A DNA stretch of 64,000 nucleotides from Oculina patagonica (lineage: Eukaryota): positions 13,020,001-13,084,000 of the forward strand of contig NC_135761.1 of the NCBI RefSeq assembly GCF_052425735.1. Reading direction: 5' to 3'. The position numbers and the translations under genes were made by a program. Shown here one piece after another: positions 2,919-56,132 of this stretch (its first letter is position 1; each line of letters starts with the position of its first letter). A model generated the notes under the pieces. That model searched no databases. It was not told the origin of the DNA and saw nothing but the letters and a program-made list of their open reading frames with translations.

Positions 2919-3046
2919 TCAAAAATCTACCAAAAAAGACACTAAGCATGACTTGCCATAAAACTGGTTTTCAAGTACATCAATAATCTCTTCCATATCT
3001 GGTCTCCATGCAGGCGTGGGTCGCAGGCATGGGTTTATCAGGCGGG
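2919..3046 (-). CDS. Kinase copy A, 3' end of last exon (cut by the gap)
   Basis: Minus-strand translation RLINPCLRPTPAWRPDMEEIIDVLENQFYGKSCLVSFLVDF*, homologous to the last exon of copy F; not in the ORF track. Confidence 0.85.
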
Positions 3047-3546
3047 NNNNNNNNNNNNNNNNNNNNNNNNNNNNNNNNNNNNNNNNNNNNNNNNNNNNNN
3101 NNNNNNNNNNNNNNNNNNNNNNNNNNNNNNNNNNNNNNNNNNNNNNNNNNNNNNNNNNNNNNNNNNNNNNNNNNNNNNNNNNNNNNNNNNNNNNNNNNNN
3201 NNNNNNNNNNNNNNNNNNNNNNNNNNNNNNNNNNNNNNNNNNNNNNNNNNNNNNNNNNNNNNNNNNNNNNNNNNNNNNNNNNNNNNNNNNNNNNNNNNNN
3301 NNNNNNNNNNNNNNNNNNNNNNNNNNNNNNNNNNNNNNNNNNNNNNNNNNNNNNNNNNNNNNNNNNNNNNNNNNNNNNNNNNNNNNNNNNNNNNNNNNNN
3401 NNNNNNNNNNNNNNNNNNNNNNNNNNNNNNNNNNNNNNNNNNNNNNNNNNNNNNNNNNNNNNNNNNNNNNNNNNNNNNNNNNNNNNNNNNNNNNNNNNNN
3501 NNNNNNNNNNNNNNNNNNNNNNNNNNNNNNNNNNNNNNNNNNNNNN
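3047..3546. other. Assembly gap (500 N)
   Basis: Run of n. Confidence 1.
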
Positions 3547-3955
3547 ATAAAAAAGCAGTTGGGTTCAAATGGTAAAATTTTTTGCTGTTTCTAAAGTTTA
3601 TCTTCGCTAAGATCTAGACTTCCCACAGTGAAGCGAGTTCGATTCCGCAAAGCGGCCCGGCTAGTGAGCGACGGAGTCGCGAAAACGAGCGACGCAAGTC
3701 GCGAGAGGTCGACCCTCGTTCCTGCGTGTCAAATTAAAACGAAGAACTTTGTCTAAAGTCTAGCTTGAGTCTAGCTGAGATCACTTACCACAGCAAAACT
3801 GATGGCGAAATGATGTCAAGATGCTGCAGTCCCGTTCTTGAAATTGAATTTTACGTTATCATTACTGATCTTTCCGAGTTTTTGCATAATTTCGCTTTGT
3901 TTTGTTTATTCACTTGACTTTACTAAAACGTATGTTTGAGTATATCCTCTTTCCA

Positions 3956-4269
3956 CAGGGTGGAAAAGGGGGTCTTAAACGCGAATCACGAGCCAATTTT
4001 TTTTTACAAATCACGAATCACGTATATTTTTTTACCATTTCTCGAATTACGTTTTTGGGTATTCATCATTAAAGAAAATGAGCTTTAACTGATTAGTTAA
4101 TTCGTGTCGCATTTACCTTTCATTAGCCAAGTAGCAAAACTGATCTTTCATGCGAGTTCACAGTGTAAGACAAGACCTAAAATGCATAAATCGAGCCAAA
4201 AGAACGCGTCCTTATACAATGTCAGTCTTTGGCTAATCACGCGTCACGCATAACCCCTTTACCACCCTG
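3956..4269. mobile_element. MITE with CAGGGTGG termini and 6-bp TSD (tttcca)
   Basis: cagggtggaaaagggg ... cccctttaccaccctg flanked by tttcca; a terminal fragment of the same family lies at ~42891-42925. Confidence 0.75.
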
Positions 4270-4601
4270 TTTCCATCATCACAGTGATGAAGAGAAGACC
4301 AGAAACCATTAGAAATACGAGCCGTCAGGGAGTGTTTTCTTCATAAACACTCCCAAAGAGAAAATTATTTTCCAATCAATTAAATAGACAGAAGAGCCAA
4401 GATATCAAGCGAAAGAATTGACTGTAGAAGCGGATGTACAGAAAAGAAAAATTGATTAACAGCGGGGGCAACCTAGTGTCAACTATTTCTAGTTAGATTT
4501 ATAGTTACAGATTTCTTTTAAATTTGCAAAGTCCTAATATATAATGCTGTTATCCTACGGTATTGTAATCTCTTCTTACTTTTGTTATTATTCTAATAAA
4601 G

Positions 4602-4757
4602 TAAGCAAGCAAGCAACTAACTAACTGGCTAACTTACTGGCTGACTGAGTGACTGAGCAACTGGCTGGCTGGCTGGCTGGCTGGCTGACTGACGACTGAC
4701 TGGCTGTCTGACTGGCTGGCTGGCTGGCTGGTGGCTGACTGACTGACTGACTGGCTG
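4602..4757. repeat. Compound tetranucleotide microsatellite (AAGC/ACTA/GCTG/ACTG)
   Basis: Direct reading. Confidence 0.9.
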
Positions 4758-5049
4758 AATAATTATATAAATGAATGAATTACATTTATATTTACATTAT
4801 ATCAGTCATTCCAATAAACAGTAACTTCAAACAATGTACTTTAAAACAGAACGGTCTTTATGTGTGTTTTCAATAAAATGACTTTTTAAGTGTGAAAAAA
4901 TGAATAACTTTATTTAAGTGTCAGGGTATAGGTGTTTAGCTTATAGAAGCTTATTGAGGACACTCTTCTACTTTACAACAAATGAAAACTTACAATAGTT
5001 TACTATATTAAATTTAGGAGAAGTTAATTAGAATAAATCTTTTGAAAGC

Positions 5050-5525
5050 AGTTTCTAAAATTACAAATACAGTCTAGTAGTGAATAAATTAAGTGTCAGA
5101 CGTAGTACATATGGGGCAATTAGAACACCGGTCCTTGATTAGAACAATGAAGTCTTTATCTCTTATACTGTTTCTAAAATTGCCGATCGTCAGTCTTTCT
5201 TGAGGAAGGAAGCTACAGTTTCGATATGTGTTCCATTGAAATATATCTAGTGGTCGTCAGCGTACATGAACAAATTGCTAGCATGCACATTTAGGGATAA
5301 ATCATTTTCGAACAGGTTCTAGAACAGCTGTCCAAACGATGAGCCTTGAGGGCGGCCCCTTGACTGGTTTTTCAATGAACTAGTCACACCATTAATTTAG
5401 ACTCCTTGACAACAGAAACATCGCCATTAGCTCAAGAGATGTTTGAGAAAACCCATACGCCTCAAGTTTCTGTATCATGACAGCATGATGTAGAGAGTCG
5501 AAAGCCTTGCTCATGTCCGTTCGCA
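5050..5525 (-). mobile_element. Degenerate L2/CR1-type RT fragment
   Basis: TDMSKAFDSLHHAVMIQKLEAYGF (ORF 5392-5637); degenerate QGSxLG and MYADD motifs further along the minus strand. Confidence 0.7.
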
Positions 5526-7866
5526 CGTATATTTTGTCCGTTGGAAACAGTTCGTTTGTAGTACCTATTTGCTCAAAATTGCTGCAGCTCCTTCTCTGGA
5601 AAGAAATTTGGAAAGACTCATCCCTGCTGAAGACCAAACACTTACCCGTTCATACCATTTTAACAAAAATGGTAACCGTTTCGTTTACCTCCGATAGAAA
5701 GTGAAACCATTTTACATACCTACGGTCACCTACGGCAGGGATGCTGCATCTTTTTTTCTTAATTTTTAACATGAACAACCCATTCAAATACTTAAATGAA
5801 AGGACCGTTAGGCAGAACCCCGGTAACTCGAACTCTCCCGCTAACTCGAACTTAGTGCAAATTCCCTTGGATTTGTGCTCATTTTTTAGTCATTTTCACT
5901 CGGTTAACTCGAACTGTGATAACTCGAATTCCCCGCTAACTCGAACTAAATCTTGCTTCCCTTGATCATAATTTACCTTGATGACTCGAATTCTGGTCCT
6001 TGCAACTCGCCACGGAAGCTCATTGAAATATCCCATTAGCTCTTCTTGTCGTGTAATCGTATTTAAATGCTTAAGCTGACACTGCAGCAACTTGATTTTA
6101 ATTAACTGCGCACGCAGTTCATGTTCTGCACTTACTTTTTTTTTTTAGCTGCGCTGCGCAGTTCTTGCTCTGCGCGACCTTTTTTTTTTTTTTTTCTCAG
6201 TGACCAGACTGATGCCCCCGCTCGGCCAGGCTGGGGTCACGCAAGGTTTAAAAGCTAGAAAACACTTACTAATGGGAAATTTTCAAATGCTTTGGACTTA
6301 ATAAGCATGTTTAGCGTGAGATGCCCGATTTTGAAGCGTTTTATTCAAAGGAAATTCTAAATTTTCATGCGTCGAAAGAAAAATATATTTCAGCGGGCCA
6401 GAATCTGTGAATAAATACTATTACGTTGCTGTAAAAGAATGTGCTGACAGGACAAGTTTCACCACAGGTAGCCAAAGCTTAAGATACGACTGAAAATAAA
6501 TAAAATGATCTGAAACTTAATAAAATGATCTGAAATTATCAACGGCTTATTGTTTTATCTATCTTCTATTACATATTCATGTGAGCTTTGTTCTACGAGT
6601 GAAAATTAGCATAATATATGCTAATACTAAAATTGCTCTCAACTAGCAAAGCGAAGCGAAAGGTCGCACACTTGAGCCGTCAGAATGCCGACCCGTGTTC
6701 ACAAAATGAGCTGTAATTCTCAAAGTTTGCCATTTCTCACCCAAAACGCCTCAAATTCATAGGCTACGATAATCATCCTGAAAATACATACCGAAAAATT
6801 GCCCAATGTTACATCCTTTCCCCGTTAAAATGACATTATTTCAGTGGTAAACCTCAACGAACCATCCGTGGCCCGAGCTCTTCTGCATTTAATCATATGC
6901 AATTTGGAACAACAAAAGCCACTTTCTAGGGGAGGTGTATGGAATTTTGTTTGTTTACTTCTCATCCCTGAGCTCATGAATATGAGGTCATCATGTGTTG
7001 CACGAGACATTCCGTACACCTCCCCTAGAAAGTGGCTTTTGTGGTTCCAAATTGCATTTTTTAAACTTATTTTGACCACTCTTCCAATATGTACTGTGTT
7101 AGGCCTTATAGTTCTAGAATTGGTATTTTTTCATTTATCCCCACCCCCGACTCATCGTGGGAATAAAGACCTTCAGCCACGCCCAGCTGATATACCGTTT
7201 GCAGAAACCTTGCTGAAAAAATGGCACTTGTTTTCTTAAAACGTGTACGTTGTCGCGATTGCGGATAGCGGACAGCGACTGTGAAATTGTAATATTGAGG
7301 GTGCAATCATTGCGGGAAGGATTTTACTCTGAACGGTCAACAAGTAAAATTACTGCCAAATAAAAGTAAAATTATTGCAAAATTTCGAAAACCTGTGAAC
7401 AGGGTGCTTTTCACAAGGTCCTGTGAAAATTGTAACCTATTTACTCGATCATGTTAAAGTTCTGGCATGTCAAATTGAGGGTTTGCATTCTGACCCTTTT
7501 TGATTACGGTCGATCACTTCAAGAATTCGTATGCACAATGCTAATACGCTTAATCCAGTAACCGGAATCCTTCGATGTTGTTGACAAGCTTTATTCCAAC
7601 GTCCATTCGATTTCTTTCGATCGTCGTTGTGATGCTGTCACTTCAGAGAACTAAAAAACGTAAAAGATCACAGAAGATCATTTTACAAATTTGCATACAC
7701 AATGTAAACTAATAAAGGTGTCTTTAAATAGGTATTTCAGGCATTTTTAATAATTTTCTTTTGACTGGCATGCTAAGAAACGACCTTCGCACCAGATTGC
7801 TCGACGGCCTGTCTTCGACACTACATTTATATTACTAAATTAAATGTTACTAGAGAAAAAACACAG

Positions 7867-8058
7867 ATCATCCACCGCGATATAAGTAGTGCTAATGTAC
7901 TGCTACGGCGACAGGGTGACCAATGGAGAGGCAAAGTGTCAGATTATGGCACTGCTAATGTTGTCCGCCAATACACGAGAGACGATCCTGGAGCTGTGAT
8001 TTACTGCGCACCTGAGGCCATTAGTGGAGCCCAAGATCAAATCATCAGTTGTATTAAG
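7867..8058 (+). pseudogene. Kinase copy B, 5'-truncated main exon (catalytic loop onward)
   Basis: IIHRDISSANVLLRRQGDQWRGKVSDYGTANVVRQYTRDDPGAVIYCAPE..ISCIK|gt; no N-lobe or coiled coil upstream. Confidence 0.8.
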
Positions 8059-8712
8059 GTTAGCTTGGCCAAAGCAGTTAAAACCATAAAAAGAAAAATA
8101 ATTAAGGGATGGTTTGAAACTGGGAAATAAATGACTCTCTCTTAACGTGCGCGGGACACGTATGCTTTGGTAGCAAAAATTGCCTCAAGGAAGCAGAGAC
8201 GTTACATTGAAAGCACTAATTTTCATCTTTACGCGAAACATCATATGATTCGCTTCCGAGACGTATTTCTTTCCCACCCATGTAATCTAGAAAATATTGT
8301 TACCGCAATGTTTCCGCAACATTGCTCTGTGGTTTAACCTGGCCGTGGTTTCACTTGGCTTGGTGGTATCTGTAATATGAGTGGGATGATTTCATTAATA
8401 GACTAATACAGTGGAACGAAAATTGGTTTGTGAAATTGGGGGTAAAATTGCAGTATTTGACACAGGAAAGGGAAACGACTTTTGCATCGAGTTATCGAGA
8501 GGTTCAAAAAATCGAGGGTTCGAAAAAAAGCTTTTCTCGTGTTCTCCCAATATTCCAATCCGACCTTAATCTTATATGTCTTGCTGTTTTTTGCGGTTTG
8601 CAATTCGCTGGTCCTAACTAAACTGCGTTCTAGCCTGGTCTATAGTCAATACAATATAAGTTTCTGGTGATGAATCATATCGTAACTAGTGAAATGTTCT
8701 GTTATATATCAG

Positions 8713-8904
8713 GTCGATGTCTTCAGTTTTGGTGTCCTCCTCTGTGAGATGTGCATCCACGAATTGCCAGATCCCCAACAGCGTGAGATGCAAATATCCC
8801 GTATGATGAACCAGCGCGTGTTTAAAGGGATCGTTGAACGTTGTCTTTATATAGAGCCTGGAATGAGACCAAATATGGAAGAGATTATTGATGAACTCGA
8901 GTAG
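8713..8904 (+). pseudogene. Kinase copy B, last exon
   Basis: ag|VDVFSFGVLLCEMCIHELPDPQQREMQ...RPNMEEIIDELE*. Confidence 0.8.
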
Positions 8905-13211: not shown

Positions 13212-16200
13212 ATGGGGCAGTTATCGACTAAATTGCAAAGACAGGTGAAAGCGCGAAAGGAACAAAAAGGAGATGGCATGGGAAGGCACTTAATCAGAAT
13301 GGAAGAACACGACGAAGATAGGAGAGTCGCTAAAGAAGAAAGAAGAGTGTCGACAGTGCAGAAAAAACAAGTTCCTAATTTGCAAAGAGTGGAAAACCAA
13401 CAAGTTAATGACGAAGTCGCCCAACGGAAAGAGAGAAGACAAATACAACTGACATCGAAAGATCAACAAATAACACATCTGGAAAGACAAGAGGAAGGGA
13501 GAAACCAACATATTATTGATCTACAACGACAGGTGAGAGAATTTTCGGGGGGAGATCAACTAGTTTCTGATCGATATTTGAAAAGGCAAATGACAGCGAG
13601 AGATCAACATGTTACTGATTTGCAAACACAATTGACAGCGAGTGAAGAACATGTAAATGAGCTACAAAAACAATTGAAAGCGAGTGACCAACTAGTGAAT
13701 GATCTGCAGGAACAAGTGACTGATCTCCAAAAACAGTTGAGAGCGAGTGACGAACATGTGACTGATATGCAAAAACAATTGTCAGCGAGTGACCAACAAG
13801 TTTTTGATCTGCAAAAACAAGTGGAAGGGGTGAACAAACATATTACTGATCTACAAAGACAAGCGAGAGAGCAATTGACAGCGACAAAAGAACAAGTTTC
13901 TGCTCAGAAAAGACAACTTAGAGCGATGGATCAACAAGTTAGCGATCTGCAAAAACAAGTGAAAGCAAGTGAGCAACAAGTTGACGATCTGCAAAAACAA
14001 GTTACTTATCTTCAAGAAAAATTGACAGCGAGTGACCAACTAGTGACTGAACTTCAAAGGCAAGTGTCAGGGAGTTTCCACCAAGTTTCTGATCTGCAAA
14101 GTGACCAGAAGATGACTGATCTGCAAAGGCAACTGAAAGCAAGAGACCAACAATTTGCTGATTTGCAAAAGCAAAAGACAGCAAAAGATCGACTAGTGGC
14201 TAATCTGCAAAAACACGTGACAGCGAGTGAGCAACAAGTTGATGATCTGCAAAGACAAATAAAAGCGAGAGACCAACGATTTTCTGATTTGCAAAAGCAA
14301 GAGACAGTAAAAGATCAACAAGTTATTGATCTGCAAAGACAACTGAATAAAAGAGACCAGCAACTAAGTAAACTGCAAAGACAACTGACTGCAAAAGATC
14401 GACAAGCTACTTATCTGCAAACACAATTGACAGCGACTGACCAACTAGTGACTAGCCTGCAAAAACAAGTGACAGCGAGTGACCAAAAAGGTGATGATCT
14501 GCAAAGACAACTGATAGCGAGAAACCAACAATTTGCTGATTTGCAAAAGCAAGAGACAGTAAAAGATCGACAAGCTACTGATGTGCAAAGACAACTGAAT
14601 GGAAGAGAACAGCAACTTAGTAATTTGCAAAGACAACTGACTGCAAAAGTTCGACAAGCTACTGATGTGCAAAGACAACTGAAGGTGAGAGACCAACAAT
14701 TTTCTGATTTGCAAAAGCAAGAGACAGTAAAAGATCAACAAGTTATTGATCTGCAAAGACAACTGAATAAAAGAGACCAGCAACTAAGTAAACTGCAAAG
14801 ACAACTGACTGCAAAAGATCGACAAACTACTTATCTGCAAAGACAACTGAATGCAAGAAACCAGCAGGATATTAATCTGCAAAGACAACTGACTGCAAAA
14901 GATCGACAAGCTACCGATCTTAAAAGACAACTGACAGTTAGAGACCAGCGAGTTAGTGATCTGCAAGGAAAGTTGACAGAGAGAGATCGACAAGTTGCTA
15001 ACCTTCAGCGTCAGTTAAGAGAAAATGAGGAAGTTTGCTTGAGAAGGCAAGAAAGAGAGCTTACTGATTTGCAAAAGCAATGGATGACAAAGGACCGACA
15101 AGTTACTGACCTTCAAGGTCAGTCACGACAAAAAGGAAAAGACATTAGAAGGCTAAAAAGACAATCGAACAGGACAGGACAGGACATATTGAGTAGGCGA
15201 TCAAGCTGGTATGACGGAGAGCTTGCTGACCTGCAAGTGCAGCTGGAACAAAGAGACCAACAAGTTACTGGTCTGCAAGGACAGCTGACAGCGAAAAACC
15301 GACAATCGAGCCGGGATAAACGAGCGATCACAGAACTGCAAATGCAACTGGCACAAAGAAACCAACAATATACTGATCTGCAGAGGCAATGGTCGACAAA
15401 AGACCGACAAGTAACTGACCTTCAATGTCAGTTAAGAGAAAGAAGAGAAGTTTTCAGAAGGCTGACTAGTCAATCGAGCAGGGATGAACGGCAGATTACT
15501 GAGCTTCAAATAGAGCTGGCACAAATCAATCAACAATTTACAGAACTGCAAGGACAAGTGACAGAGAGAGAGCGACAAGTCACTGACGCACGGCGTCAGT
15601 TAAGAGAAAATGAGGAAGTTTGCTTGAGAAGGCAAGAAAGAGAGCTTACTGATTTGCAAAAGCAATGGATGACAAAGGACCGACAAGTTACTGACCTTCA
15701 AGGTCAGTCACGACAAAAAGGAAAAGACATTAGAAGGCTAAAAAGACAATCGAACAGGACAGGACAGGACATATTGAGTAGGCGATCAAGCTGGTATGAC
15801 GGAGAGCTTGCTGACCTGCAAGTGCAGCTGGAACAAAGAGACCAACAAGTTACTGGTCTGCAAGGACAGCTGACAGCGAAAAACCGACAATCGAGCCGGG
15901 ATAAACGAGCGATCACAGAACTGCAAATGCAACTGGCACAAAGAAACCAACAATATACTGATCTGCAGAGGCAATGGTCGACAAAAGACCGACAAGTAAC
16001 TGACCTTCAATGTCAGTTAAGAGAAAGAAGAGAAGTTTTCAGAAGGCTGACTAGTCAATCGAGCAGGGATGAACGGCAGATTACTGAGCTTCAAATAGAG
16101 CTGGCACAAATCAATCAACAATTTACAGAACTGCAAGGACAAGTGACAGAGAGAGAGCGACAAGTCACTGACGCACGGCGTCACTTAAGAGGAAACGAGG

Positions 16201-16943
16201 AAGAATTCAGAAGGCTGCGAAGTCAATCGAGCCAGGATGACCGAGAGATTACTGACCTGCAAATGCAATTGGCAGCAACGGACCTAGAAAGGGACCAACA
16301 TGTCGCTGACTTGCAAAGACAAGTAGACACGATGAGAAATCGTGCGACTGAACTACAACAAACTCACACGCACGGCTGGGTAATAAATCGGAATGAAATA
16401 ATGCTTAAAACAGATGAACTTCTGGGAGAAGGTGCATGGGGGAGAGTTGTTCAAGGAAAATTTCGCCGCAGTAATGTTGCTGTAAAACAAATCCATGAAG
16501 TCCTTCTGTCTCGTTACAGCAGGACAGTTTTTGAGCGAGAAGTGGGTATTGCTTCAAGATGCCGCCATCCGTGCTTGCTGCAGTTTATTGGAGCAATCAA
16601 CGATGATGAAGGACTATTGCTAGTAACGGAACTCATGGATCGTAGCTTGAGATCACTGTACGAAGAGCGACCACTCACAGAAAGGGAAATTTCTGTTATT
16701 GCGCTGGATGTAGCTCAAGCACTAAACTACCTTCATCAATACAAACCCGATCCCATCATCCACCGTGACATCAGCAGTGCAAATGTGTTGCTATGGCGAC
16801 AGGGTGAGCAATGGAGAGGCAAAGTGTCAGATTTTGGCACTGCTAATGTTGTCCGACAATGCACAAGAGACGATCCTGGAACTGCGATTTACTGCGCACC
16901 TGAGACCCTTGGTGGAGCCCGGGATCAAATCATCAGCTGTAAG
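13212..16943 (+). CDS. Kinase copy C main exon: ~1050-aa coiled coil + TKL-type protein kinase (~1311 aa with last exon)
   Basis: ATG in MGQLST; heptad repeats; GEGAWG, VAVK, HRDISSAN, DFG, APE; donor aag|gttagc. Confidence 0.9.
15008..16183 (+). repeat. Apparently perfect in-frame 585-bp (195-aa) tandem duplication within copy C
   Basis: Identical translated blocks at offset 585; identical antisense ORFs at 15119/15704 and 15201/15786. Confidence 0.95.
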
Positions 16944-17572: not shown

Positions 17573-17776
17573 ATCGATGTTTACAGTTTTGGTGTCCTCC
17601 TTTGCGAGATGTGGATCCGAGAATTGCCAAGTCCCCAACAGCGTGGAATGCAAATATCCCGTATGATGAACTGCTGGTTTCAAGAGCTCGTGATACGCTG
17701 TGTGCAAATAGAGCCTGGGACAAGACCAAATATGGAAGATATGATTGATGGACTCGAGTATTTTGTGGTTCCTTAA
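17573..17776 (+). CDS. Kinase copy C last exon
   Basis: ag|IDVYSFGVLLCEM...RPNMEDMIDGLEYFVVP*. Confidence 0.88.
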   Translation: MDVYSFGVLLCEMWIRELPSPQQRGMQISRMMNCWFQELVIRCVQIEPGTRPNMEDMIDGLEYFVVP

Positions 17777-18426: not shown

Positions 18427-19848
18427 AAGGTCGACTGGTTGTGCGTGAACTTATAAAGCACGCTGCTGCGCTGTGATTGGTTGGTTTTCAACAGCTGTGA
18501 TTGGTGCATTTCGATCCTCGCTGTTTCTGTGTCCTGTTGTTCTCTCAGCGGTCCGCTGTCGTACAGTTCTCCTGTTGTTGTGTTTTTTGATCGTGGGCAT
18601 CCATGCTTCAGGAATTTCAATTCCATTATCCCTGTTGATATTATTAGGGTGAAGTCTTATATGAATTGCCTCGTTGACCCTGCGTTTGTACCAGTGTGGG
18701 TCACGATCAATAAACTTTACCTCATTCTAAAGCGGGTAGTGTCCGGTGTTGTTGGTGTGTTCTGCAACGGCGGAGGTCTGGGTACGGGCGAGTCGGATGT
18801 CCTGGTCGTGCTCTTTTATCCTGTCTTGCATAGGTCTTCTCGTCTCACCGATGTAAACTTTGCCACATTCACAGGGAATCCTTAGTGGAATCAACAGCGT
18901 CTTTCGGCCATACTAGGTGTGATCGTAGTGTGCTTTCCGACTTGAAAACAGTCCGCACGCCTTGTTGTTGTAGGCAGCGGCGAAGTTGTTCGGAAAAACC
19001 TTTGACGTAGGGCAAAACCGCAGTGGATTTAAACTCAGTCGAGGGTTCAGCATTGGTGCTCGGTTTTCTGGTCTTGGTGATCTTATGCAAGAAAGAAAAA
19101 GGATAACCATTAGATACAAGAACAGATGACAGATGTTTTTTTCTCCTTGGAGATAACAGATGGTTTTGTTACGAGGCGTTTAGCACGCTCGTAAATGAGC
19201 AATGCTGAACCCTCGACCGAGTTTAAATCCAGTGCGGTTTGCCCTACGTCAAAGGTCTTTCCGAACAACTTCGCCGCTGCCTACAACAACAAGGCGTGCG
19301 GACTGTTTTCAAGTCGGAAACCACACTACGATCACACCTAGCACGGCCGAAAGACGCTGTTGATTCCACTAAGCAAGATGGCGTTGTTTACAGGATTCTC
19401 TGTGAATGTGGCAAAGTTTACATCGGTGAGACGGGAAGACCTATGCAAGACAGGATAAAAAGAGCACGACCGGGACATCCGACTCGCCCGTACCCAGACC
19501 TCCGCCGTTGCAGAACACACCAACAACACCGGACACTACCCGCTTTGGAATAAGGTAAAGTTTATTGATCGTGACCCACACTGGTACAAACGCAGGGTCG
19601 AAGAGGCAATTCACATAAGACTTCACCCTAATAATATCAACAGGGATAATGGAATTGAAATTCCTGAGGCATGGATGCCCACGATCAAAAAACACAACAA
19701 CAGGAGAATTGTACGACAGCGGACCGCTGAGAGAACAACAGGACACAGAAACAGCGAGGATCAAAATGTACTAATCACAGCTGTTGAAAACCGACCAATC
19801 ACAGCGCAGCAGCGTGCTTTATAAGTTCACGCACAACCGGTCGACCTT

Positions 19849-22119: not shown

Positions 22120-22917
22120 ATGGGACAGCAACTGAGTAACCTGCGAAGCCAAAGACGACAAATTACTGACCTGCAACGTCAATTACGTGAAAAAGACCAA
22201 ACTATCACAAATCTGAGAAATCAGTCCAGGGTGGAGGACCTTCAGATTACTGCCCTGAATATCGAAGTGGCAACAAGGGACCAACAAGTTGCTCACTTGC
22301 AAAGTCAAGTAGACACGCTGAGAACTCGTGTGACTGAACTAGAACAGACTAACTCGCGTGACTGGGTGATAAATCTGAATGAAATAAGCTTAATGCGAGA
22401 TGAACGGCTTGGGAAAGGTGCATGGGGGAGTGTTTACCAGGGAAAATTTCGCCGCTGTAATGTTGCCGTAAAACAAATACACAACGAAGTTCTTAACAGG
22501 GCGTATTTTGAACGAGAAGTAGGCATTGCTTCAAGATGCCGCCATCCTTGCTTGTTGCAGTTTATTGGAGCAACCAACGACCAAAGGCCATTGATAGTAA
22601 CGGAGCTCATGGAAGGTAGCTTGAGATCATTATATGAAGAGCGACCACTCACTGAAAGGGAAATATCCGTTTTTTCGCTGGATGTAGCTCAAGCACTAAA
22701 CTATCTTCACCTATTCAACCCCAATCCCATCATCCACCGCGATATTAGTAGTGCCAATGTGTTGTTATGGCGACAGGGTGACCAATGGAGAGGCAAAGTG
22801 TCAGATTATGGCACTGCTAATTTCGTACGGCAATGCACGAGAGACGATCCTGGAGCTGTTATTTACTGCGCACCTGAGACCCTCAGTGTAGCACAGAATC
22901 AAATTATCAGCTGTAAG
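22120..22917 (+). CDS. Kinase copy D main exon: ~80-aa N-terminal coiled coil + TKL-type kinase (~330 aa total)
   Basis: MGQQLS start; GKGAWG, VAVK, HRDISSAN, DYG, APE; donor aag|gtcagt. Confidence 0.9.
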
Positions 22918-23565: not shown

Positions 23566-23760
23566 GTTGATGTGTACAGTTTTGGCGTTCTTCTCTGTGA
23601 AATGTGCATCCGGGAATTGCCAGATCCTCAAAGGCGTGATGAACAAGTCAGACGAGTGGCAAACCAAAGGCTTCTGAGACGCCTGATAACACCATGTCTG
23701 CAAGCCACGCCTGGATCAAGACCAGATATGGACGAAATTATTACTGAACTTGAAAACTAA
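23566..23760 (+). CDS. Kinase copy D last exon
   Basis: ag|VDVYSFGVLLCEMCIRELPDPQRRDEQV...RPDMDEIITELEN*. Confidence 0.88.
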   Translation, partial: VDVYSFGVLLCEMCIRELPDPQRRDEQVRRVANQRLLRRLITPCLQATPGSRPDMDEIITELEN

Positions 23761-26925: not shown

Positions 26926-29324
26926 TGTCTAGGAAAATTACGAAAAACAGAAGAAAAAGTTTCCTTTCTTCAAATACAACTGCAAGAAAAGGACAAACAT
27001 TTGACTTACCTGCAGAGACAACTACAAGCAATGGAGCGACAAATTAGTGATCTCCAAAGACAAGTGACAACGATAGACCAACAAGTTGGTGATCAGCAAA
27101 GACAACTGGCACAAAGAGACCAATGTGTTACTGATCTTGTCAGACAAGTGACAGCGTTAGACCAACGAGTTACTGATCTGCAAAGACAAATGGGAGCAAG
27201 AGACCAACATGTTACTGCTCTGCAAAGAAAACTTACAGCGAAAGACCAACAAGTCACAGGTCTGCAACGACAACTGACAGAAAATGACCAACAAGTTACA
27301 GATTTGCAAAGAAAACTGACAGCGAGAGACCAAGAAGTGACTGATCTGCAACGACAATTTACAGCGAGGGAGCAGCAAGTAACAGATCTGCAAAGACAAC
27401 TGACAGAAAGAGACCAACAGTTTACAGATCTGCAAAGACAACTGACAGAAAGAGACCAACAAGTTACAGATGTGCAAAGACAACTGACAGATAGAGACCA
27501 ACAAGTTACAGATCTTCAAAGACAAATGACAGAAAAAGACCAACAAATTACAGATCTGGATAGACAACTGACAGAAAGAGACCAACAACATTCACATCTG
27601 GAAAGACAACACACAGAAAGAGACCATCAAGTTACAGAGCTACAAAGACAACTGAGAGAAAGAGACCAGCAAGTTACAGATCTGCAAAGACAACTGACAG
27701 AAAGAGATCACCAAATTACAGATCTGTATAGACAACTGACAGAAAGAGACCAACAAGTTACAGATCTGCAAAGACAACTGACAGAAAGAGACCAACAAAT
27801 TACAGATCTACAAAGACAACTGACAGAAAGAGACCAAGAAGTCACTGATCTGCAAAGACAACTGACAGAAAGAGACCAACAAGTTACAGATCTGCAAAGA
27901 CAACTGACAGAAAGAGACCAACAAGTTACAGATCTGCAAAGACAACTGAAAGAAAGAGACCAACAAGTTACAGATCTGGATAGACAACTGACAGAAAGAG
28001 ACCAACAAGTTACAGATCTGCAAAGACAACTAACAGAAAGAGACCAACAAGTTACAGATCTGCAAAGACAACTGACAGAAAGAGATCAACAAGTTACAGA
28101 TCTAGAGAGACAACTGACAGAAAGAGACCAACAGTTTACAGATCTGCAAAGACAACTGACAGAAAGAGATCAACAAGTTACAGATCTAGAGAGACAACTG
28201 ACAGAAAGAGACCAACAGTTTACAGATCTGCAAAGACAACTGACAGAAAGAGACCAACAAGTCACAGATCTGCAAAGACAACTGACAGAAAGAGACCAAC
28301 AAGTTACAGATCTGCAAAGACAACTGAAAGAAAGAGACCAACAAGTTACAGATCTGGATAGACAACTGACAGAAAGAGACCAACAAGTTACAGATCTGCA
28401 AAGACAACTGACAGAAAGAGACCAACAAGTTACAGATCTGCAAAGACAACTGACAGAAAGAGATCAACAAGTTACAGATCTAGAGAGACAACTGACAGAA
28501 AGAGACCAACAGTTTACAGATCTGCAAAGACAACTGACAGAAAGAGATCAACAAGTTACAGATCTAGAGAGACAACTGACAGAAAGAGACCAACAAGTTA
28601 CAGATCTGCAAAGACAACTGACAGAAAGAGACCAACAAGTTACAGATCTACAAAGAAAACTGACAGAAAGAGACCAACAAGTTACAGATCTGCAAAGACA
28701 ACTGGACACGGCGAGAGAACGATCCAGTCAGAATAGACATATAATTCAACGTGACTGGGTAATAAATCGAAATGACGGTAACTCTCATGGCAGATGACCG
28801 GCTTGGGGAAGGTGCATGTGGGGAAGTTTCTCGAGGGAAATTTCGCCGCAGTGATGTTGCTGTAAAAAAATCTATGACATACTCTTGTCGACCCCTTACA
28901 TGATTACAAGTTTTGAGCGAGAAGTGGGCATTGCCTCAAGATACCGCCATCCTTGCTTGTTGCAGTTTATTGGAGCAATCAACGATGATGAAGGGCTATT
29001 GCTAGTGACGACACTCATGGATCGTAGCTTGAGATCACTGTATGAAGAGCGACAGCTCACTGTAAGGGAAATTTCCGCTATTTCGCTGGATGTAGCTCAA
29101 GCACTAAACTACCTACACCAAAACAAACCGATCCCATTATCCACCGCGATATAAGTAGTGCCAATGTACTGCTACGGAGACAAGGTGACCAATGGAGAGG
29201 CAAAGTGTCGGATTATGGCACTGCTAATGTTGTCCGTCAGTGCACCAGTGACGATCCTGGAGCTGTGATTTACTGCGCACCTGAGGCCATAAGTGGAGCC
29301 CAAGATCAAATCATCAGTTGTAAG
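26926..29324 (+). pseudogene. Kinase copy E main exon: ~610-aa repeat coiled coil + kinase with two frameshifts
   Basis: +1 shift near 28775 (stop at 28797) and -1 shift near 29128 (aaaccgatccc vs aaacccgatccc); no MGQ start found. Confidence 0.8.
27040..28705 (+). repeat. 42-bp coding minisatellite (QVTDLQRQLTERDQ), ~40 units, with a 378-bp higher-order repeat
   Basis: Unit caagttacagatctgcaaagacaactgacagaaagagaccaa; variant units recur at 27946/28324 and 27973/28351 (offset 378 = 9x42). Confidence 0.95.
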
Positions 29325-30348: not shown

Positions 30349-30537
30349 GTTGATGTTTTCAGTTTTGGTGTTCTTCTCTGTGAGATGTGCATCCAAGAAT
30401 TACCAGATCCCCAACAGCGTGAGATGCAAATATCCCGTATAAACCAGCGTCTGTTTAAAGAAATCGTTGAACGCTGTGTGCAGATAGAGCCTGGAACAAG
30501 ACCAAATATGGAAGAGATTATTGATGAACTTGAGTAG
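30349..30537 (+). pseudogene. Kinase copy E last exon
   Basis: ag|VDVFSFGVLLCEMCIQELPDPQQREMQ...EEIIDELE*. Confidence 0.8.
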
Positions 30538-37411: not shown

Positions 37412-40400
37412 GGAGGGTCTGAATGGGGGGTTCCACATGTCGGTAATCGGTTAAAAATTCCTTACTTTGTCGGTTGTCGGTTAAAATTTTCGACCTTTGT
37501 CGGTTGTCGGTAAATGTCAGTCAATAATTAAAAGTGCAAGTTAATTCCTCGCGAAGCGAGGTGTATAATTTTGTCCCTCAAAGGGCTCAGGCGGGATGAA
37601 ATCTCGTGTGGAGTTTACGGTCATATATATTTATTTATTCCTCGCGAAGCGAGGCCGAAGGCCGAGCGTAGCGGGGTGTATAATTTTGTCCCTCAAAGGG
37701 CTCAGGCGGGATGAAATCTCGTGTGGAGTTTACGGTCATGTATATATATATATATATATATTTGTGAGCTTGGTGTCTGGCGGAAATGACGTCACACGGC
37801 CGCCGCGCGCTGGTGGCCTAATGGTAAGGCGTCGAACTTGAAATCAGATCTTCGGGACTGAGGGCGCGGGTTCGAATCCGGCTAGGGTTTTTTTTTTTTC
37901 CTTATTTTTTTTGTGGGTTCGAATCCTGAGCCTTTCATTTTTATCGCTTTTCTTTTCGGATTAAAATAACACTGATTTCCACATAATACTCCCTCAACGC
38001 CTATTCAGGCTATAAACCTTTCATCGCCATCAGGGGCGCGCGGGCGGAGGGTTCGAATCCTCCTGCCGTTCGTTCTTCTTTTTTTTTAATGCCCTCAAAT
38101 AAATGTCCAAACTGCGACTATCCAATAATTTGTCGATGATTTTGAAAATAGCCTGCGCTTCCCAACGCTTTATACCTCTTTACGAACCTGAAAGAGCCGC
38201 CATCTTCAAAGCGGAGTAGACCCTGGGAACGAGGGTGTCGCGGCCATGCCCGTTACTAATTTTTAACAAATATATCTTCCTGCCTACTGTGGAAAATTGA
38301 ATATGTACAATGTTCAACTTCAAATAATCCACTCCTTATTTATAACACCACCCCCCCCCCCCCCCGCCTCCCCAACCCAGAGCTTCGCGAGGCCCTGCGA
38401 GTCACGTATTACTAGTTTGTGAGCTTGGTGTGTGGCGGAAATGACGTCACACGGCCGCCGCGCGCTGGTGGCCTAATGGTAAGGCGTCGAACTTGAAATC
38501 AGATCTTCGGGACTGAGGGCGAGGGTTCGAATCCGGCTAGGGTTTTTTTTTTTTTTTTTTTTTTTTTTTTCTTATTTTTTTTGTGGGTTCGAATCCTGAG
38601 CCTTTCATTTTTATCGCTTTTCTTTTCGGATTAAAATAACACTGATTTCCACATAATACTCCCTCAACGCCTATTCAGGCTATAAACCTTTCATCGCCAT
38701 CAGGGGCGCGCGGGCGGAGGGTTCGAATCCTCCTGCCGTTCGTTCTTCTTTTTTTTTAATGCCCTCAAATAAATGTCCAAACTGCGACTATCCAATAATT
38801 TGTCGATGATTTTGAAAATAGCCTGCGCTTCCCAACGCTTTATACCTCTTTACGAACCTGAAAGAGCCGCCATCTTCAAAGCGGAGTAGACCCTGGGAAC
38901 GAGGGTGTCGCGGCCATGCCCGTTACTAATTTTTAACAAATATATCTTCCTGCCTACTGTGGAAAATTGAATATGTACAATGTTCAACTTCAAATAATCC
39001 ACTCCTTATTTATAACACCACCCCCCCCCCCCCGCCTCCCCAACCCAGAGCTTCGCGAGGCCCTGCGAGTCACGTATTACTAGTTTGTGAGCTTGGTGTG
39101 TGGCGGAAATGACGTCACACGGCCGCCGCGCGCTGGTGGCCTAATGGTAAGGCGTCGAACTTGAAATCAGATCTTCGGGACTGAGGGCGAGGGTTCGAAT
39201 CCGGCTAGGGTTTTTTTTTTGTTTTTTTTTTTTTCTTATTTTTTTTGTGGGTTCGAATCCTGAGCCTTTCATTTTTATCGTTTTTCTTTTCGGATTAAAA
39301 TAACACTGATTTCCACATAATACTCCCTCAACGCCTATTTAGGCTATAAACTGCTGATGTTGAAAACTGTTCATTGTTGTATGAAAATTTGCCATTTCGT
39401 TCTGAACCCATTGTTGCTGATGTAAAGGCTGATCGGGATTTCTCCATCCATTGGAAAGATAATCATCTTTGTTTAGTTCCTGTTGCTGTTGCTGTAATTG
39501 TTGTTGTTGTCTACGCGTGGCACTATTTTCTCGAGCAGACTGTAATCGAATATTTCTCTCCTCCTCCGATTCTAATTGTAAGCGCGCTGCATCACTTTCC
39601 CTTCTTAATTGTAATCTATCCTGTTGCTGTTTAGTTGATTCTACTAAAAGTCTGTCTGTATAATTTTGTCTCAGTAATTGTGATGTCTGTATTCTTGTGT
39701 CTTCAGCTTCTGTTTGTATTCTATCCACGGCATTTTGTCGAAGTCTCTGTAATCGTGCAGTTCGTTGTTGTCCAGTTTCTGTTTGTATTCTGTCTGCTGT
39801 ATTTTGTCGAGGTCTCTGTAATCGTGCAGTTCGTTGTTGTTCAGTTTCTGTTTGTATTCTGTCCGCGGTATTTTGTCGAAGTCTCTGTAATCGTGCAAAT
39901 CGTTGTTGTTCAGTTTCTGTTTGTATTCTGTCTGCTGTATTTTGTCCGTTACTAGGCAACAATAACCCAGAGCTTCGCGAGGCCCTGCGAGTCACGTATT
40001 ACTAGTTATTAATATTTGTTACATAATTTACGCAGTTTAAGACTTTAAACTTTAGACGAGATGTAAATTTGTAATAAAACACTTTAACCTCGTTAACTCT
40101 GTTTTTTACTGGAATGTGTTCGTCTAGTACCGATAAAATTACCAAAGCTTTTATTCTAGATGTGAATTTGTTTCCTGTCGATTACAGGGCATCGACGTTT
40201 TTAAGAGAGGTACATCAGACAAAGAGTGAAACACCTACTTCAGCCTTGGGTTACGCAATTTTGCTATTTCGGAAGTTTGTTCTCCAAAGAAGTCCACAAA
40301 CACTTATTACGCTTATTAATCAGCGGCTTTCGTGCCTTTACCGTGGGTTTCTTTTTTTTTTGCCAAAATTTCGTTGCCATACGTATCATTCTGCAGCGTT

Positions 40401-44300: not shown

Positions 44301-44752
44301 TACTTCCTGAGGTGGCGGCTGCACACAGGCTACCTGCTAACGCGCCTTTTGTTTTGTACCTGCAATTTTAACTTAAAGTACGCGGTCTGCTGGTAGGAGG
44401 TCTAGAACAGAAAAAAATATACCTAGTCTGATGTCGTCCCGAAAACTTCCGAATTCCCAGACGCCCTATTTTTTTCTTTCCAAGGCCATCTTCCATCAGA
44501 CCGCGTATTTGTCACATATCATAAAAGCTAACACGCCAGCTTGTCACACAACAACTATGTTTGTCACATAAAAATTGGCCATTTTTTTCTTATCTACACA
44601 AGCAAATAAAATTGCTAGTGTAAACTAGGCTTTAGTCTGCATAGTTTAACATTTGCTGATATGCAGTTTCCTTGACGGTAATTTTCAAGATTTCTGTAAG
44701 ATTGTATGGCAACAAGAAAATGGCACTAAAACAGAATAAATCCAGGAGTATA

Positions 44753-45600
44753 AAGCTGTGTTCACACTTGGGCGAAACATGATTAGTCTGATCATGAATG
44801 AAACATGTTTTGTTGTAAAAAGTGTTTACATCAGGCAGTGCATTGCGCGAATCATGATTGAAACATGATTAGTCTGATCATGATTGAAACAACCGCACGA
44901 GGTAGTTTCAATCATGATCAGACTAAACACGTTAAAAATGGCGGCTATGCGGTGAGGAGACGAGTGCCTAAAAGCTTCAAAATTGGGCCTTCTACTATGA
45001 GCTTCTATGAGACCAAATGTTTATTTAAAATATGGGCTAATGAAGCGATACAACAGGAATTATCGGCGATGGGTAGAAAGCAGAGTTTTTGGCAGAACAT
45101 CGCTACGAAAGTTTACGACGGCGGATACAAGCGCACAGCATTCACAACACAAAAAATTCTTCTTTTACCGAAGAAAGCACAAATACTGGCAATACTATCT
45201 CCTTGCTAAACACCGCTTGAAAGTCCTGCTCCATCGAAGAGCTTGAAAATACACAGAAAGTCAGGGACGGCGGAGCATTTTTCCAAGTTGGGGGGGGGGG
45301 GGGGGCGCTGACTAGTGACTTGAAGTGGGGGGCTTAAAAGAATCTTCTCTTAGTAAGTCTTTATTTTTTCACAAAGCTAATGGAAACTTTATTGTAATTT
45401 CGAGCTATATTTTTCGGTTCAAGTGTACCAGATTTATGCAAGAACCGCAAAACCACATAAATTACACACGAGGCATGAAAAGTGTTTGAAAATGACACCT
45501 AATGTGAACGATGCAATTACAAGCAAGTTTAGTTGAAACATGTTTCGTTGAAACATGTTTATTCTAAACATGTTTCGGATTAAATTAAGAAGTGACATTT
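44753..45600 (+). mobile_element. Harbinger-like remnant with Myb/SANT (trihelix) fragment
   Basis: KIWANEAIQQELSAMGRKQSFWQNIATKVYDGGYKRT; repeated GAAACATG subterminal motifs. Confidence 0.6.
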
Positions 45601-45876
45601 GGTGGGTGTATTCATGTGTCATCATGTGTTATTGCTTGATTTAAATCAATTTTCATTTTGTTTTCGTTACCATCGCGCAAGGTTTAACAGTTCAAGACTA
45701 AAGACCAAGTTTTCCAAAGAGAAACAAGAAGAGCATTACAAGTAAAAAAGAAGCAACGTTTGAGTTAGACACGAAACCCGTGCAAGATTAAAATGAAAAC
45801 TGAAAAGTGAGTAATATATTAACAGAAATTTTCGAAGTAGTACCAAGTGCGAAAAAGACAGACCAAATTGAACGAG

Positions 45877-48156
45877 ATGGGACAAACATTACCTACACTC
45901 CAGAAAGAAGAACTACGGGTGAGAGTGCAAATGGACGAGGAAGTCACTAACTTGGAAAACCAGTTAACCAGGAATGAAGATATGAAAGAGATGCGAGTGA
46001 ATCATGAAAAGGCTATTTCTGACCTAAGAAGACAATTGAATGTGAAGGACCTACAAATTACTGACTTACGGAGTGACATGGAACAACAACTGATAGATAA
46101 TCGTGAATTGCAACAGCAATTTAAAATTTCAAAAGAGCAGTTAACAAAACAAGAGACAGAGAAAGCAGTTCAACAAGAACGTCTAAGATATTTGGAAATA
46201 CAAAGGTCAGAAGAGAAAAAGCAAGTAAAAATTTTGCGTGGACAAGTACAAAATCTAAAGACTGAGCTAGGCACTAAAGATAAAAAACTAAGTCGTTTAG
46301 ACACAGAGCGTGTAGATATGCAAGAACAGCCAAGAAAACTGCAAGAACAATTAAAGGAAAAAGACACTGAAGAACTAAGTGTTACTTATCAGCAAGGTCA
46401 ATTTAGAGACACAACTAGACAGACAAAAGACTTACCAACTCAAATTACTAACCTGCTAAAACAGTTACAAGAAAAACAGAAATGTACGAAAAAGGTTGAA
46501 AAACAGTTAAAAGGAGAACAAAATCGAGCTTATAAACTGGAAAGTGAGTTAGGTGCACACAAGCATCAACTGCCACAAAATCAGCATCAATTTGCTTACA
46601 TACAAAGAGAATTAGGAAAAGGGGACACAGAAAATGAACACGAGCAATTAAAGGTAAAACACCAGCAGGTTAGTCAGCTGGATAGGCAGTTAATAATAAG
46701 AGAACAACAGTTGGAGGCGAAACAAAAAGAATTGACTGATCTAAAACTACAATTGAAGAGAAACGATGCTGAAAAAGCATCCTTAAAGACACAGATAGGA
46801 GAGGAAGGTAAACGAGTTCACAGTCTACAAGGGCAGTTAAAAACTAAAGAAGAGGAGTTGGCAGTCTTGAAACAAAAATTACAAGAAAGAGATATAGAAA
46901 GGGAAAAATATCAGCAATGTACTCAGCTGGAGGCAGATTTGAACGCAAAAGAGCAAGAGTTAGAAAAAATGCAAAAACAATTAAAAGGAATAAAAAGAGA
47001 TAAAGATAAATTGCAGGGTCACTTAAGAGTGCAACAGAGCAAAAACGAACAACTGGTACAGAAGCAAGAGCAACTGAATAACTTGCAAGAACAATTACGA
47101 AGAAAAGACAAAGACGTTGGGACCTTAGAGCAACAGCTAACAGTGCAAAAGCAACGTGTTAGTGATCTGCAAAGTCAGTTAACTGGCATACAAGAGCAAT
47201 CACAAGAAAAACACCAACAAATTATTGATATGCAAAGACGGATGGACACAATAAGAGAACAATTAGAACAAAATGAGAGGAAGGAGGAACAAGTGGAAAA
47301 AACATTGAATAGCTGCCAAGAACAAATACAAGCAATAACAGCTGAAAATGAAACTTTACAGGAACAGTTACGACGAACACAGGGACAAGTTTCTGAGCTG
47401 GAAAGTGACTTAAGAACAAAAGAGCAAGGACTGGCATTGAAGACAGAGCAAGTGACTCACCTGGAAGAACAATTACACGAAAAGGACGAACAAGTAAGTG
47501 ATCTCCAAAGACAAGTGGGCACGATGAGAGATCGTGTCAATGAACTAGACCGAACTTACTCCAGTGAGAATCGACGTACAATTCCAAACGACTGGGTAAT
47601 AAATCGAAAAGAAATTCAAATGACAGAAGAAGAGCTTGGGTTTGGAGCATGGGGAAGAGTTGTTCAAGGAAAATTTCGCCGCAGTAACGTTGCTGTAAAA
47701 CAAATCCATGAAGTCCTTCTGTCTCCTCACAGTAGGACAATTTTTGAGCGAGAAGTGGGAATTGCTTCAAGATGCCGCCATCCTTGCTTGTTGCAGTTTA
47801 TTGGAGCAACCAACGATGATAAAGGGCTATTGCTAGTGACGGAGCTCATGGATCGTAGCTTGAGATCACTGTATGAAGAGCGGCCACTCACTGAAGGAGA
47901 AATTTCAGTCATTTCGCTGGATGTAGCTCAAGCGCTAAACTATCTTCACCAAAACAAACCCAAACCCATCATCCACTGTTACATCAGTAGTGCAAATGTG
48001 TTGCTATGGCGACAGGGTGACCAATGGAGAGGCAAAGTGTCGGATTATGGCACTGCTAACTTCGTCAGGCAATGCACCAGAGACCATCCTGGAGCTGTGA
48101 AATACTGCGCACCTGAGGCCCTTGATGGAGCAGAGATTCAAATTATCAGCTGTAAG
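45877..48156 (+). CDS. Kinase copy F main exon: ~570-aa coiled coil + predicted pseudokinase (~840 aa total)
   Basis: MGQTLP start; GFGAWG, VAVK, DYG and APE retained; catalytic loop reads HCYISSAN; donor aag|gtaggt. Confidence 0.88.
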
Positions 48157-48384
48157 GTAGGTAGCTAGGTACTTTTTATTCAGCATTAATTATCAATTAT
48201 TTCTTTCATGCCTGCTTTATTAAAGTTCGGTCGTCTTAAATATCGGCTGGAGATGTGCAAAATGAAGAAATTAAAAATTACTCAAATGTGGAACGGCGTA
48301 GAAGACGGATCTCCAATGTTGATTCCTGCCGTTTTAGAGTTATTTTGTACAATGTGCCATGCATACTTACCAACGTACAGACTT

Positions 48385-48655
48385 TATTAGCTCGTCCCCA
48401 CGGGGCTTTTCAGGGTCTAAGTACATTACAAAATTAAAAAAAAAGCAGAAAGCTTTATCACACATGACAATAATGACGTGAAAAGAAGACAAAGATTGAA
48501 TATAAATTAAATAAAACAGTCACTAAAATGCTTTCGCCTGAGTAGGCGCTTGAAATCCGTCACAGATGGGCTATGTTTGACTGCAGGCTGCAACTCATTC
48601 CACAGAGAGGTCGCTCTATATTGAAAAGTCCTTTGACCGCTAGCAGTGCTAACTA
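48385..48655 (-). mobile_element. L2-like LINE 3' end in the intron of copy F
   Basis: SGQRTFQYRATSLWNELQPAVKHSPSVTDFKRLL on the minus strand. Confidence 0.65.
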
Positions 48656-48954
48656 AGAGATTTAATGATTCTACAGCTCGAATATCACACCTTTCAATCT
48701 CAAATTTGGTGTATAGTATCTCTGTTTAACTCCTGTTAAACCACATTTTTCTTTTTTGTGTGGATCGTTTAAAAGCCGAAAAAGTTATCAATTCTGTGCA
48801 CGTGTCCATACATTGCCTGTAACTAAATAACTCTTGTGGTGGTTAAGCGTGGTTTTCAATAAGGAATCACGAGGCTATTTCCCCTCGTCTTTCGTTGTTT
48901 GTGCGAGAAAGACTGCTGGTTTAAACGCAGCATTGTGTTTGGCTCTGTTTTTAG

Positions 48955-49197
48955 GGCGATGTTTACAGTTTTGGTGTTCTTATCTGTGAAATGCACATCC
49001 GGGAATTGCCAGATCCACAAAGGCGTGATGGACAAGTCAAACGCTTTAAGAACCGGAGGCTTCGGTCCCACCTGATAATCCCATGTCTACGACACAAGCC
49101 TGCATGGAGACCAGATATGGAAGAGATTATTGATGAGCTTGAAAACCAGTTTCATGGCAAGTCATGTTTAGTGTATTTTTTGGTAATTTTAATTTGA
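48955..49197 (+). CDS. Kinase copy F last exon with hydrophobic C-terminal extension
   Basis: ag|GDVYSFGVLICEMHIRELPDPQRRDGQV...ELENQFHGKSCLVYFLVILI*. Confidence 0.85.
   Translation, partial: GDVYSFGVLICEMHIRELPDPQRRDGQVKRFKNRRLRSHLIIPCLRHKPAWRPDMEEIIDELENQFHGKSCLVYFLVILI

Positions 49198-56096: not shown

Positions 56097-56132
<36 letters not shown>

Follow-up and report, generated by a model that had tools for sequence, protein, structure and literature searches.

A tandem array of TKL kinases on coiled-coil rods of variable length in the coral Oculina patagonica

Coiled-coil-tethered kinases and lineage-specific expansions of TKL kinases are both known already. TNNI3K (CARK; TKL group, MLK family, HH498 subfamily), an active kinase, has an N-terminal coiled coil and ankyrin repeats. 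MLK, DLK, LZK and ZAK, also TKL kinases, dimerise via a zipper or coiled coil for trans-activation, and in ROCK, MRCK and DMPK a long parallel coiled coil joins the kinase to a membrane-binding end; in ROCK2, this 107-nm coil serves as a spacer whose length, not its sequence, matters (PMC4686654, PMC5082667). Here, we analyzed a stretch of 64,000 nucleotides of the Oculina patagonica genome (NCBI RefSeq assembly GCF_052425735.1, contig NC_135761.1, positions 13,020,001 to 13,084,000 of the forward strand; hereafter the window), which carries a tandem array of genes for TKL kinases with N-terminal coiled coils of very different lengths. The reading we favor, and regard as moderately probable, is that these are rod-tethered kinases with a putative N-myristoyl anchor, whose rod length drifts by repeat instability. 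The genes are already in GenBank and RefSeq, but the family itself is apparently undescribed: literature searches on coral, TKL, coiled-coil, cnidarian kinome and TNNI3K found nothing on it, a Protein Atlas look-up gave generic TKL clusters only, and the database names of its genes are either ‘uncharacterized’ or misleading, such as ‘myosin-like’, ‘drkD’ and ‘CLIP1’.

Searches with tblastn and self-alignment of the window identified five copies, B to F, of a two-exon gene on the plus strand (Table 1). Their proteins run from an MGQ start, present in C, D and F as the first in-frame ATG, through a coiled coil to a TKL kinase. The copies share a common structure: exon 1 ends in ..(I)SCK at a GT donor, a phase-0 GT-AG intron of ~0.6-1 kb follows, and exon 2 begins with (V/I/G)DV(Y/F)SFG and finishes near ..ELE, with canonical splice sites in the modelled copies. 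Copies C, with 1311 amino acids (aa), and D, with 330 aa, are intact; F encodes 840 aa. The spliced model of D is identical, residue for residue, to the GenBank protein, and that of F agrees with the first 836 aa of KAL9975198.1.

An initial annotation of the window, made from the sequence alone, had proposed six paralogues, A to F, with one gene structure, MGQ starts and near-identical kinase domains. The shared structure stands for B to F, while A is inverted and amounts to a fragment of exon 2. The MGQ start was recovered in three copies and is missing from E, which has neither MGQ nor ATG. The kinase domains are less alike than proposed, with a protein identity of 73-85% and a synonymous divergence (dS) of 0.44-0.59 among C, D and F. 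The coil lengths given there proved right (D 80, F 571 and C 1054 aa; E ~600 codons), as did the description of intact, catalytically degenerate, frameshifted and truncated copies amid transposable elements: C and D are intact, F reads HCY in place of HRD, E carries indels, B is cut at its 5' end, and transposon open reading frames (ORFs) lie among them.

Table 1. Features of the kinase array in the window (position 1 is the first letter of the window).
Feature	Position	Strand	Basis or remark
Copy A, 3' fragment of F-type exon 2 (last ~42 codons + stop)	2919..3046	-	translation ends ..PDMEEIIDVLENQF..stop
Assembly gap, 500 N	3047..3546	.	sole N run in window; interrupts copy A only
Copy B exon 1 remnant, 5'-truncated pseudogene, abrupt start at IIHRD	7867..8058	+	tblastn; homology begins at HRD; GT donor kept
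Copy B exon 2, 63 codons, open	8713..8904	+	~80% identical to E exon 2 and flank
Copy C exon 1, MGQLST start, 1054-aa coil, kinase I-VIII, intact	13212..16943	+	ORF; Pfam Pkinase residues 1067-1235
Internal duplication in C coil, 661-bp copies offset 585 bp (195 codons), 97.7% identical	14958..16203	+	self-alignment; recent
Copy C exon 2, 67 codons + stop	17573..17776	+	splice model
Copy D exon 1, MGQQLSN start, 80-aa coil, kinase I-VIII, intact	22120..22917	+	= KAL9975196.1
Copy D exon 2, 64 codons + stop	23566..23760	+	splice model
Copy E exon 1, pseudogene, no ATG/MGQ start, 600-codon open coil, kinase with at least three 1-bp indels	26926..29324	+	
E coding minisatellite, ~40-42 units x 42 bp, consensus TDLQRQLTERDQQV	27016..28704	+	TRF period 42/84/126
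Copy E exon 2, 62 codons, open	30349..30537	+	splice model
Copy F exon 1, MGQTLPT start, 571-aa non-repetitive coil, kinase HRD -> HCY (codons 47974-47982)	45877..48156	+	
Copy F exon 2, 80 codons + stop, F/A-specific tail NQFHGKSC..	48955..49197	+	splice model

What sets the copies apart is the rod. Hydrophobic periods of 3.49-3.50 and 2.33 residues dominate in the coils of C, D, E and F, and the coil of C, with a period of 3.49 residues, contains a single Pro in 1054 aa. For D, AlphaFold2 with a 20-sequence alignment predicted a single helix at residues 2-77, followed by the kinase fold, at a mean pLDDT of 87; in a two-copy prediction, the D coil scored 0.56 against 0.40 for the best control, and the tool gave no verdict. 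The rod of E consists of 42 units of a 14-residue two-heptad repeat, 12 of which match the consensus exactly, and the corresponding 42-bp DNA units are on average 83% identical, with the strongest self-matches at offsets of 84 bp and 378 bp. The F coil is non-repetitive, and a search of 5.8 billion proteins returned no homologue of it but itself. Changes in length are also seen outside the window. Compared with its close paralogue L001, locus L002 has about five extra 14-residue units inserted, and in clade II of the family (described below) the kinases are 88-96% identical, while the coil exons span 112-880 aa; loci L006 and L008, for example, have kinases that are 95.7% identical and coil exons of 212 and 880 aa. 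The intact copies have coils of 80, 121, 196, 571 and 1054 aa.

The rod is the fast-changing part of these genes, and its length changes via repeat expansion and contraction. The idea that the coiled coil is the variable module, in length as well as in sequence, is thus well founded, given the spread within clade II, the F coil without homologues, the 42-bp repeats and the 585-bp duplication in C. That one of the longest and most homogeneous arrays is found in the dead copy E suggests that such expansion does not depend on selection.

How strongly are the two parts of the protein constrained? Pairwise Nei-Gojobori estimates gave a ratio of nonsynonymous to synonymous divergence (dN/dS) of 0.20-0.38 for the kinase, indicating purifying selection. 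For the L001/L002 pair, dN/dS is 1.29 in the coil and 0.25 in the kinase (Fisher p = 0.0014); for D and its orthologue L035, the values are 0.49 and 0.29, a difference that is not significant in the Fisher test. In neither of these two pairs is the coil dN/dS significantly above 1, and only one in-frame 6-bp indel allele was seen in the sequenced DNA runs over D. Selection on the rod sequence is weak and the kinase is conserved; judging from these substitution ratios, the coil looks relaxed, not demonstrably positively selected.

The array is much larger than the window. A stretch of ~665 kb on the same chromosome (12.93-13.60 Mb) holds at least 25 loci, almost all of them plus-strand, five more are found at 1.66-1.79 Mb, and scattered copies sit on six other contigs; a six-frame search gave at least 40 matches in the genome, which is a lower bound. 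A kinase tree built from 34 loci taken from the genome, together with proteins of other corals, shows three clades. Clade I (SH-aLRT 99) unites C, D and F with four neighbors at 12.96-13.13 Mb, interleaved with proteins of other corals. Clade II, at 13.16-13.60 Mb, is a young burst in which most terminal branches measure 0.02-0.07, and clade III comprises the 1.7-Mb cluster and copies on contig C6. The clade II burst (loci L006-L019) holds at least 13 genes.

D, the one copy assessed for synteny, has a one-to-one orthologue, locus L035, in another coral assembly (ENA ERZ25067872): the exon 1 DNA is 85% identical, upstream non-coding sequence can be aligned, the kinase dS is 0.33, and the coils measure 80 and 77 aa. 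No C-like or E-like neighbor was found within 10 kb of L035. Because dS among C, D and F exceeds that between D and L035, the window paralogues predate the species split. The cluster evolves by duplication and decay, in line with the birth and death proposed for it at the outset: E, B and A are dead, F is degenerate, and the tandem array contains pseudogenes. D, at least, is stably orthologous with its rod length conserved, though its neighborhood differs.

The conserved length of D raises the question of whether the rods are adaptive molecular rulers, each length being kept for a particular distance between kinase and anchor, as in ROCK2. The architecture of anchor, rod and kinase would suit such a role, as would the discrete lengths of the intact copies, the near-constancy of D across species and the precedent that coil length matters in ROCK2 and coil sequence does not (PMC4686654, PMC5082667). 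We nevertheless consider rulers unlikely: the pseudogene E also has a long homogeneous array, the longest rods hold very recent duplications, and the conservation of length comes from one orthologue pair.

At the other end of the protein, the kinase is well defined. C matches the Pfam families Pkinase and PK_Tyr_Ser-Thr with E = 3e-30 and 1e-21, D with 1e-26 and 1e-22, and F matches Pkinase only (E = 3.5e-25). The best solved relatives are TNNI3K, RAF, TAK1, CTR1 and ZAK, which places the family in the TKL group, a placement that reflects the ranking of PDB matches and not a group-level phylogeny. TNNI3K is the best solved match, with E ~2e-26 over ~200 residues. It shares the motifs HPC(V/L)(I/L)QF(V/I)GA and PIIHRD, and has HRDLNSHN where the family has HRDISSAN. 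Like TNNI3K, some cnidarian paralogues combine ankyrin repeats with the kinase; the window copies are without them. Unlike TNNI3K, to which it is a distant match, the coral family has DYG in place of DFG and forms a large cnidarian-specific expansion with interchangeable N-terminal modules, and its rods are built of 14-residue repeats and reach 1054 aa.

The signature HRD(I/V)SS(A/S)N with (V/L)SDYG was found in nearly all motif-showing proteins among the 235 fetched, ranging over corals, Nematostella, Actinia, Hydra and Hydractinia, while a stramenopile outgroup has the canonical HRDMKSPN and DFG. By these motifs, the family is a cnidarian-specific TKL branch with Ser for the catalytic-loop Lys and DYG for DFG. 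In the window, both substitutions can be seen at, for example, 16700-16730 and 22660-22690 (HRDISSAN, DYG). L032 (contig C6, 31.87 Mb), the most divergent O. patagonica paralogue, retains HRDIK and DFG.

Loss of the loop Lys and of DFG in essentially all members could be taken to mean that the whole family consists of non-catalytic pseudokinase scaffolds, with the rods as the functional part. This we judge highly improbable. An alignment of 20 cnidarian sequences, from corals to Hydra, shows no change at the beta-3 Lys, the alpha-C Glu, the HRD Asp, the catalytic Asn, APE or the subdomain IX Asp, and at least 90% of the sequences retain the DYG Asp. TNNI3K is likewise without the Lys, with Asn at this position of its HRDLNSHN. 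The catalytic residues are all present in C and D, which, given their invariance across the family and the equal lack of the loop Lys in TNNI3K, are probably active kinases. Not all of them are present in F, and E and B are broken. The HCY of F, found among the 235 family proteins only in two database models of F itself, is, on this comparison, a true exception within the family.

The N termini differ between clades. C (MGQLSTK) and D (MGQQLSN) fit the pattern for N-myristoylation (PROSITE PS00008: initiator Met, Gly at position 2, a small uncharged Ser or Thr at position 6 and a residue other than Pro at position 7), and so do L001, L002 and the proteins P0014, P0002, P0009 and P0024. In C, D, L001, L002, Stylophora P0014 and several other coral proteins, MGQxx(S/T) is followed by a stretch rich in Arg and Lys, and the broader form MG(Q/H)xx(S/T) recurs in L001, L002, Stylophora P0014 and other corals. 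The myristoylated kinase c-Abl 1b also starts with MGQQ. An MGQ start throughout the family was considered and rejected, as clades II and III have an internal-repeat MEQQLTN and other N-terminal exons.

In annotated paralogues of clades II and III, the head of the protein is instead a CAP-Gly, Ras/Roc, PTB or ankyrin module, or HEPN_DZIP3 together with a TRADD-N-like domain. The nearest solved match of the CAP-Gly is the third CAP-Gly of CYLD (E = 1e-22), and P0162 joins HEPN_DZIP3 and the TRADD-N-like domain to the same kinase. This modularity, as read from the domain matches, supports a general plan in which a putative targeting head is followed by a rod and the kinase. On the same chromosome as the window, a tandem CAP-Gly head is found in P0129 and P0140, that of P0129 being closest to the third CAP-Gly of CYLD, and other annotated paralogues there have Ras/Roc or PTB heads.

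One could go further and view the cnidarian TNNI3K-like kinase as a universal output module on a tunable rod, onto which targeting or sensing heads are exchanged: the myristoyl anchor, the CYLD-type CAP-Gly, HEPN_DZIP3 with TRADD-N, Roc and PTB. This is speculation, to which we give little credence. If it were true, the coding minisatellite would quickly reset rod length, and hence kinase reach or oligomerization register, and would create a graded ‘ruler’ family in stress or immune signaling.

Returning to rod-tethered kinases whose length drifts, how might they work? In clade I, myristate and a basic patch would form the N-terminal anchor. The rod, built of two-heptad 14-residue units, would most likely be a parallel dimer, which would pair the kinases for trans-activation and place them one rod length from the anchor. 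With 0.1485 nm per residue, that distance would be ~12 nm in D, 85 nm in F and ~155 nm in C; the spacing of roughly 10-150 nm estimated initially is arithmetically correct if the rod is continuous, and the AlphaFold2 model of D has a single helix over its coil. Unequal crossing-over or slippage in the 42-bp coding repeats, together with larger internal duplications, shifts the length, and the resulting variation would mainly be a tolerated product of repeat instability, fixed gene by gene.

Several observations speak against this mechanism. F (MGQTLPT) has Pro at position 6 and fails the myristoylation pattern, and most clade II and III paralogues do not begin with MG. The Lys in HRDxK that marks Ser/Thr kinases is Ser family-wide, so that, going by the motif, activity is not guaranteed. 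Finally, the 80 and 77 aa of D and its orthologue indicate that rod length is not wholly free to drift.

Among described kinases, ROCK2 is likely the closest working analogy. In ROCK, MRCK and DMPK, as would be the case in the coral proteins, a long parallel coiled coil lies between the kinase and a membrane-binding end. ROCK differs in being an AGC and not a TKL kinase and in its opposite polarity, with the kinase N-terminal and PH-C1 C-terminal; it is also a conserved single-copy gene of fixed length, whereas the coral genes are tandem and variable in length. The MLK/DLK/LZK/ZAK group offers a precedent for dimerization within the TKL group, and ZAK and TAK1 are among the PDB matches. However, its zippers are short and C-terminal to the kinase, while the coral coil is N-terminal and 80-1054 aa long, and no orthology is implied.

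The variable rod and constant kinase had led the initial annotation to propose a diversifying system like those of innate immunity or allorecognition, with the coil as a hypervariable sensor or oligomerization code and the kinase as a constant effector. The lineage-specific tandem expansion with pseudogenes and the fast divergence of coil sequence and length are in keeping with this, and so are the paralogues with CYLD-type CAP-Gly or, in P0162, HEPN_DZIP3 and TRADD-N-like domains. In cnidarians, NACHT is most commonly partnered with HEPN_DZIP3 (PMC8260672), and sessile marine invertebrates show an expansion of TRADD-N (PMC8195603); these expansions, like the present one, are tandem, lineage-specific and variable in architecture. 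Unlike them, the genes of the window carry neither domain: in Pfam, the matches of C, D, E and F are confined to coiled coil and kinase, with no immune domain. Moreover, no coil dN/dS significantly exceeds 1, C, D and F predate the species split, D has a syntenic orthologue of the same coil length, and the family was not found in our literature searches. The variable rod, the constant kinase and the birth and death of copies thus stand, but nothing found ties the window copies directly to immunity: they are without an immune domain, and positive selection is not demonstrated. Stable one-to-one orthology with invariant lengths, which the annotation had named as evidence against its own proposal, was found in part, namely for D. 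We therefore regard a diversifying immune system as doubtful. The length variation is not a demonstrated immune diversification, and an immune role of the window copies is possible, the case for it being circumstantial.

Two aspects of the family appear to be new: its occurrence across Cnidaria as one kinase with many N-terminal heads, and ten-fold shifts in rod length among paralogues with ~95% identical kinases, driven by a 42-bp coding repeat. The family can be seen as a natural experiment on the importance of coiled-coil length to kinase signaling, and it adds candidate signaling genes for research on coral stress and immunity.

As a gap lies inside the array, one may ask whether the copies are an assembly artefact, that is, collapsed or expanded repeats or a haplotype duplication. 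Next to the gap, copy A, whose tail is of the type specific to F exon 2, lies in an inverted repeat. To the right of the gap (3547-7866), there is neither DNA homology to the F gene region nor kinase-like coding sequence on either strand; with nothing there that continues A, continuity and frame across the gap cannot be established, and A is treated as a fragment. An artefact is nonetheless hardly credible. The kinase proteins differ by 15-27%, the flanks differ as well, and identity between the arms of the inverted repeat is only 77-86%. The D locus and the C kinase exon are also present in independent DNA runs from other samples, and D and F agree with their models in GenBank and RefSeq. Four sequencing runs over D include intergenic DNA and the start of the intron, show no splice junction and are therefore genomic DNA. 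Runs guessed, but not confirmed, to be RNA contained up to 48% of the sampled words of the C kinase exon, and a spliced transcript of a clade I homologue was found in another sample as L036, an intron-less 2.3-kb Logan contig.

The inverted repeat itself measures 2-2.4 kb, pairs 977-3046 with 49067-51501 and takes in the end of the F-type exon 2 as well as the sequence downstream of it, which makes the left edge of the window part of an inverted block. L001, the next gene leftwards, lies ~12 kb outside the window and is likewise encoded on the minus strand.

Some details of single copies deserve mention. At 22384 in D, contigs from three DNA runs under the same organism label, all from a 2024 study and covering at least two samples, show an in-frame 6-bp insertion directly after the coil-kinase junction, with substitutions clustered at 22353-22439; this variant looks like an allele of D. 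In E, the coil frame (26926-28725) is open over 600 codons despite its many codons for Gln, Arg, Lys and Glu, each a single step away from a stop, and a search upstream did not find an MGQ exon. An open coil before a frameshifted kinase suggests either a very recent expansion or homogenization of the 42-bp array in a pseudogene, or a surviving coil-only product from an internal Met.

For F, the RefSeq model XP_078363909.1 (1066 aa; window 45877-60633) splices exon 2 at 49164, before the stop, to a small exon at 51287-51376 and then continues through three of the four exons (56846-60633) of the gene downstream. GenBank keeps that gene separate as KAL9975200.1 (221 aa, 56371-60633), for which a Pfam search gave no match. 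If real, XP_078363909.1 would combine a coil, a pseudokinase and an unknown domain, but it may equally be a prediction artefact. Caution is thus advisable with the automatic annotation of this family, in which gene names mislead and gene models fuse neighbors.

Between the copies lie transposons and repeats. ORFs with zf-RVT, zinc-knuckle gag and RVT_1 matches are found between E and F and 3' of F. The transposon-rich interval between E and F also contains, at 39339-39995 on the minus strand, an ORF with 69-bp tandem repeats and a weak match to the Pfam family STPRs (E = 1e-5), just under the gathering score. Between C and D, at 18481-19764, almost identical peptides of ~100 aa are encoded by two ORFs in opposite orientation, an inverted duplication that flanks a third ORF at 19239-19553; this element is probably a transposon with inverted ends.

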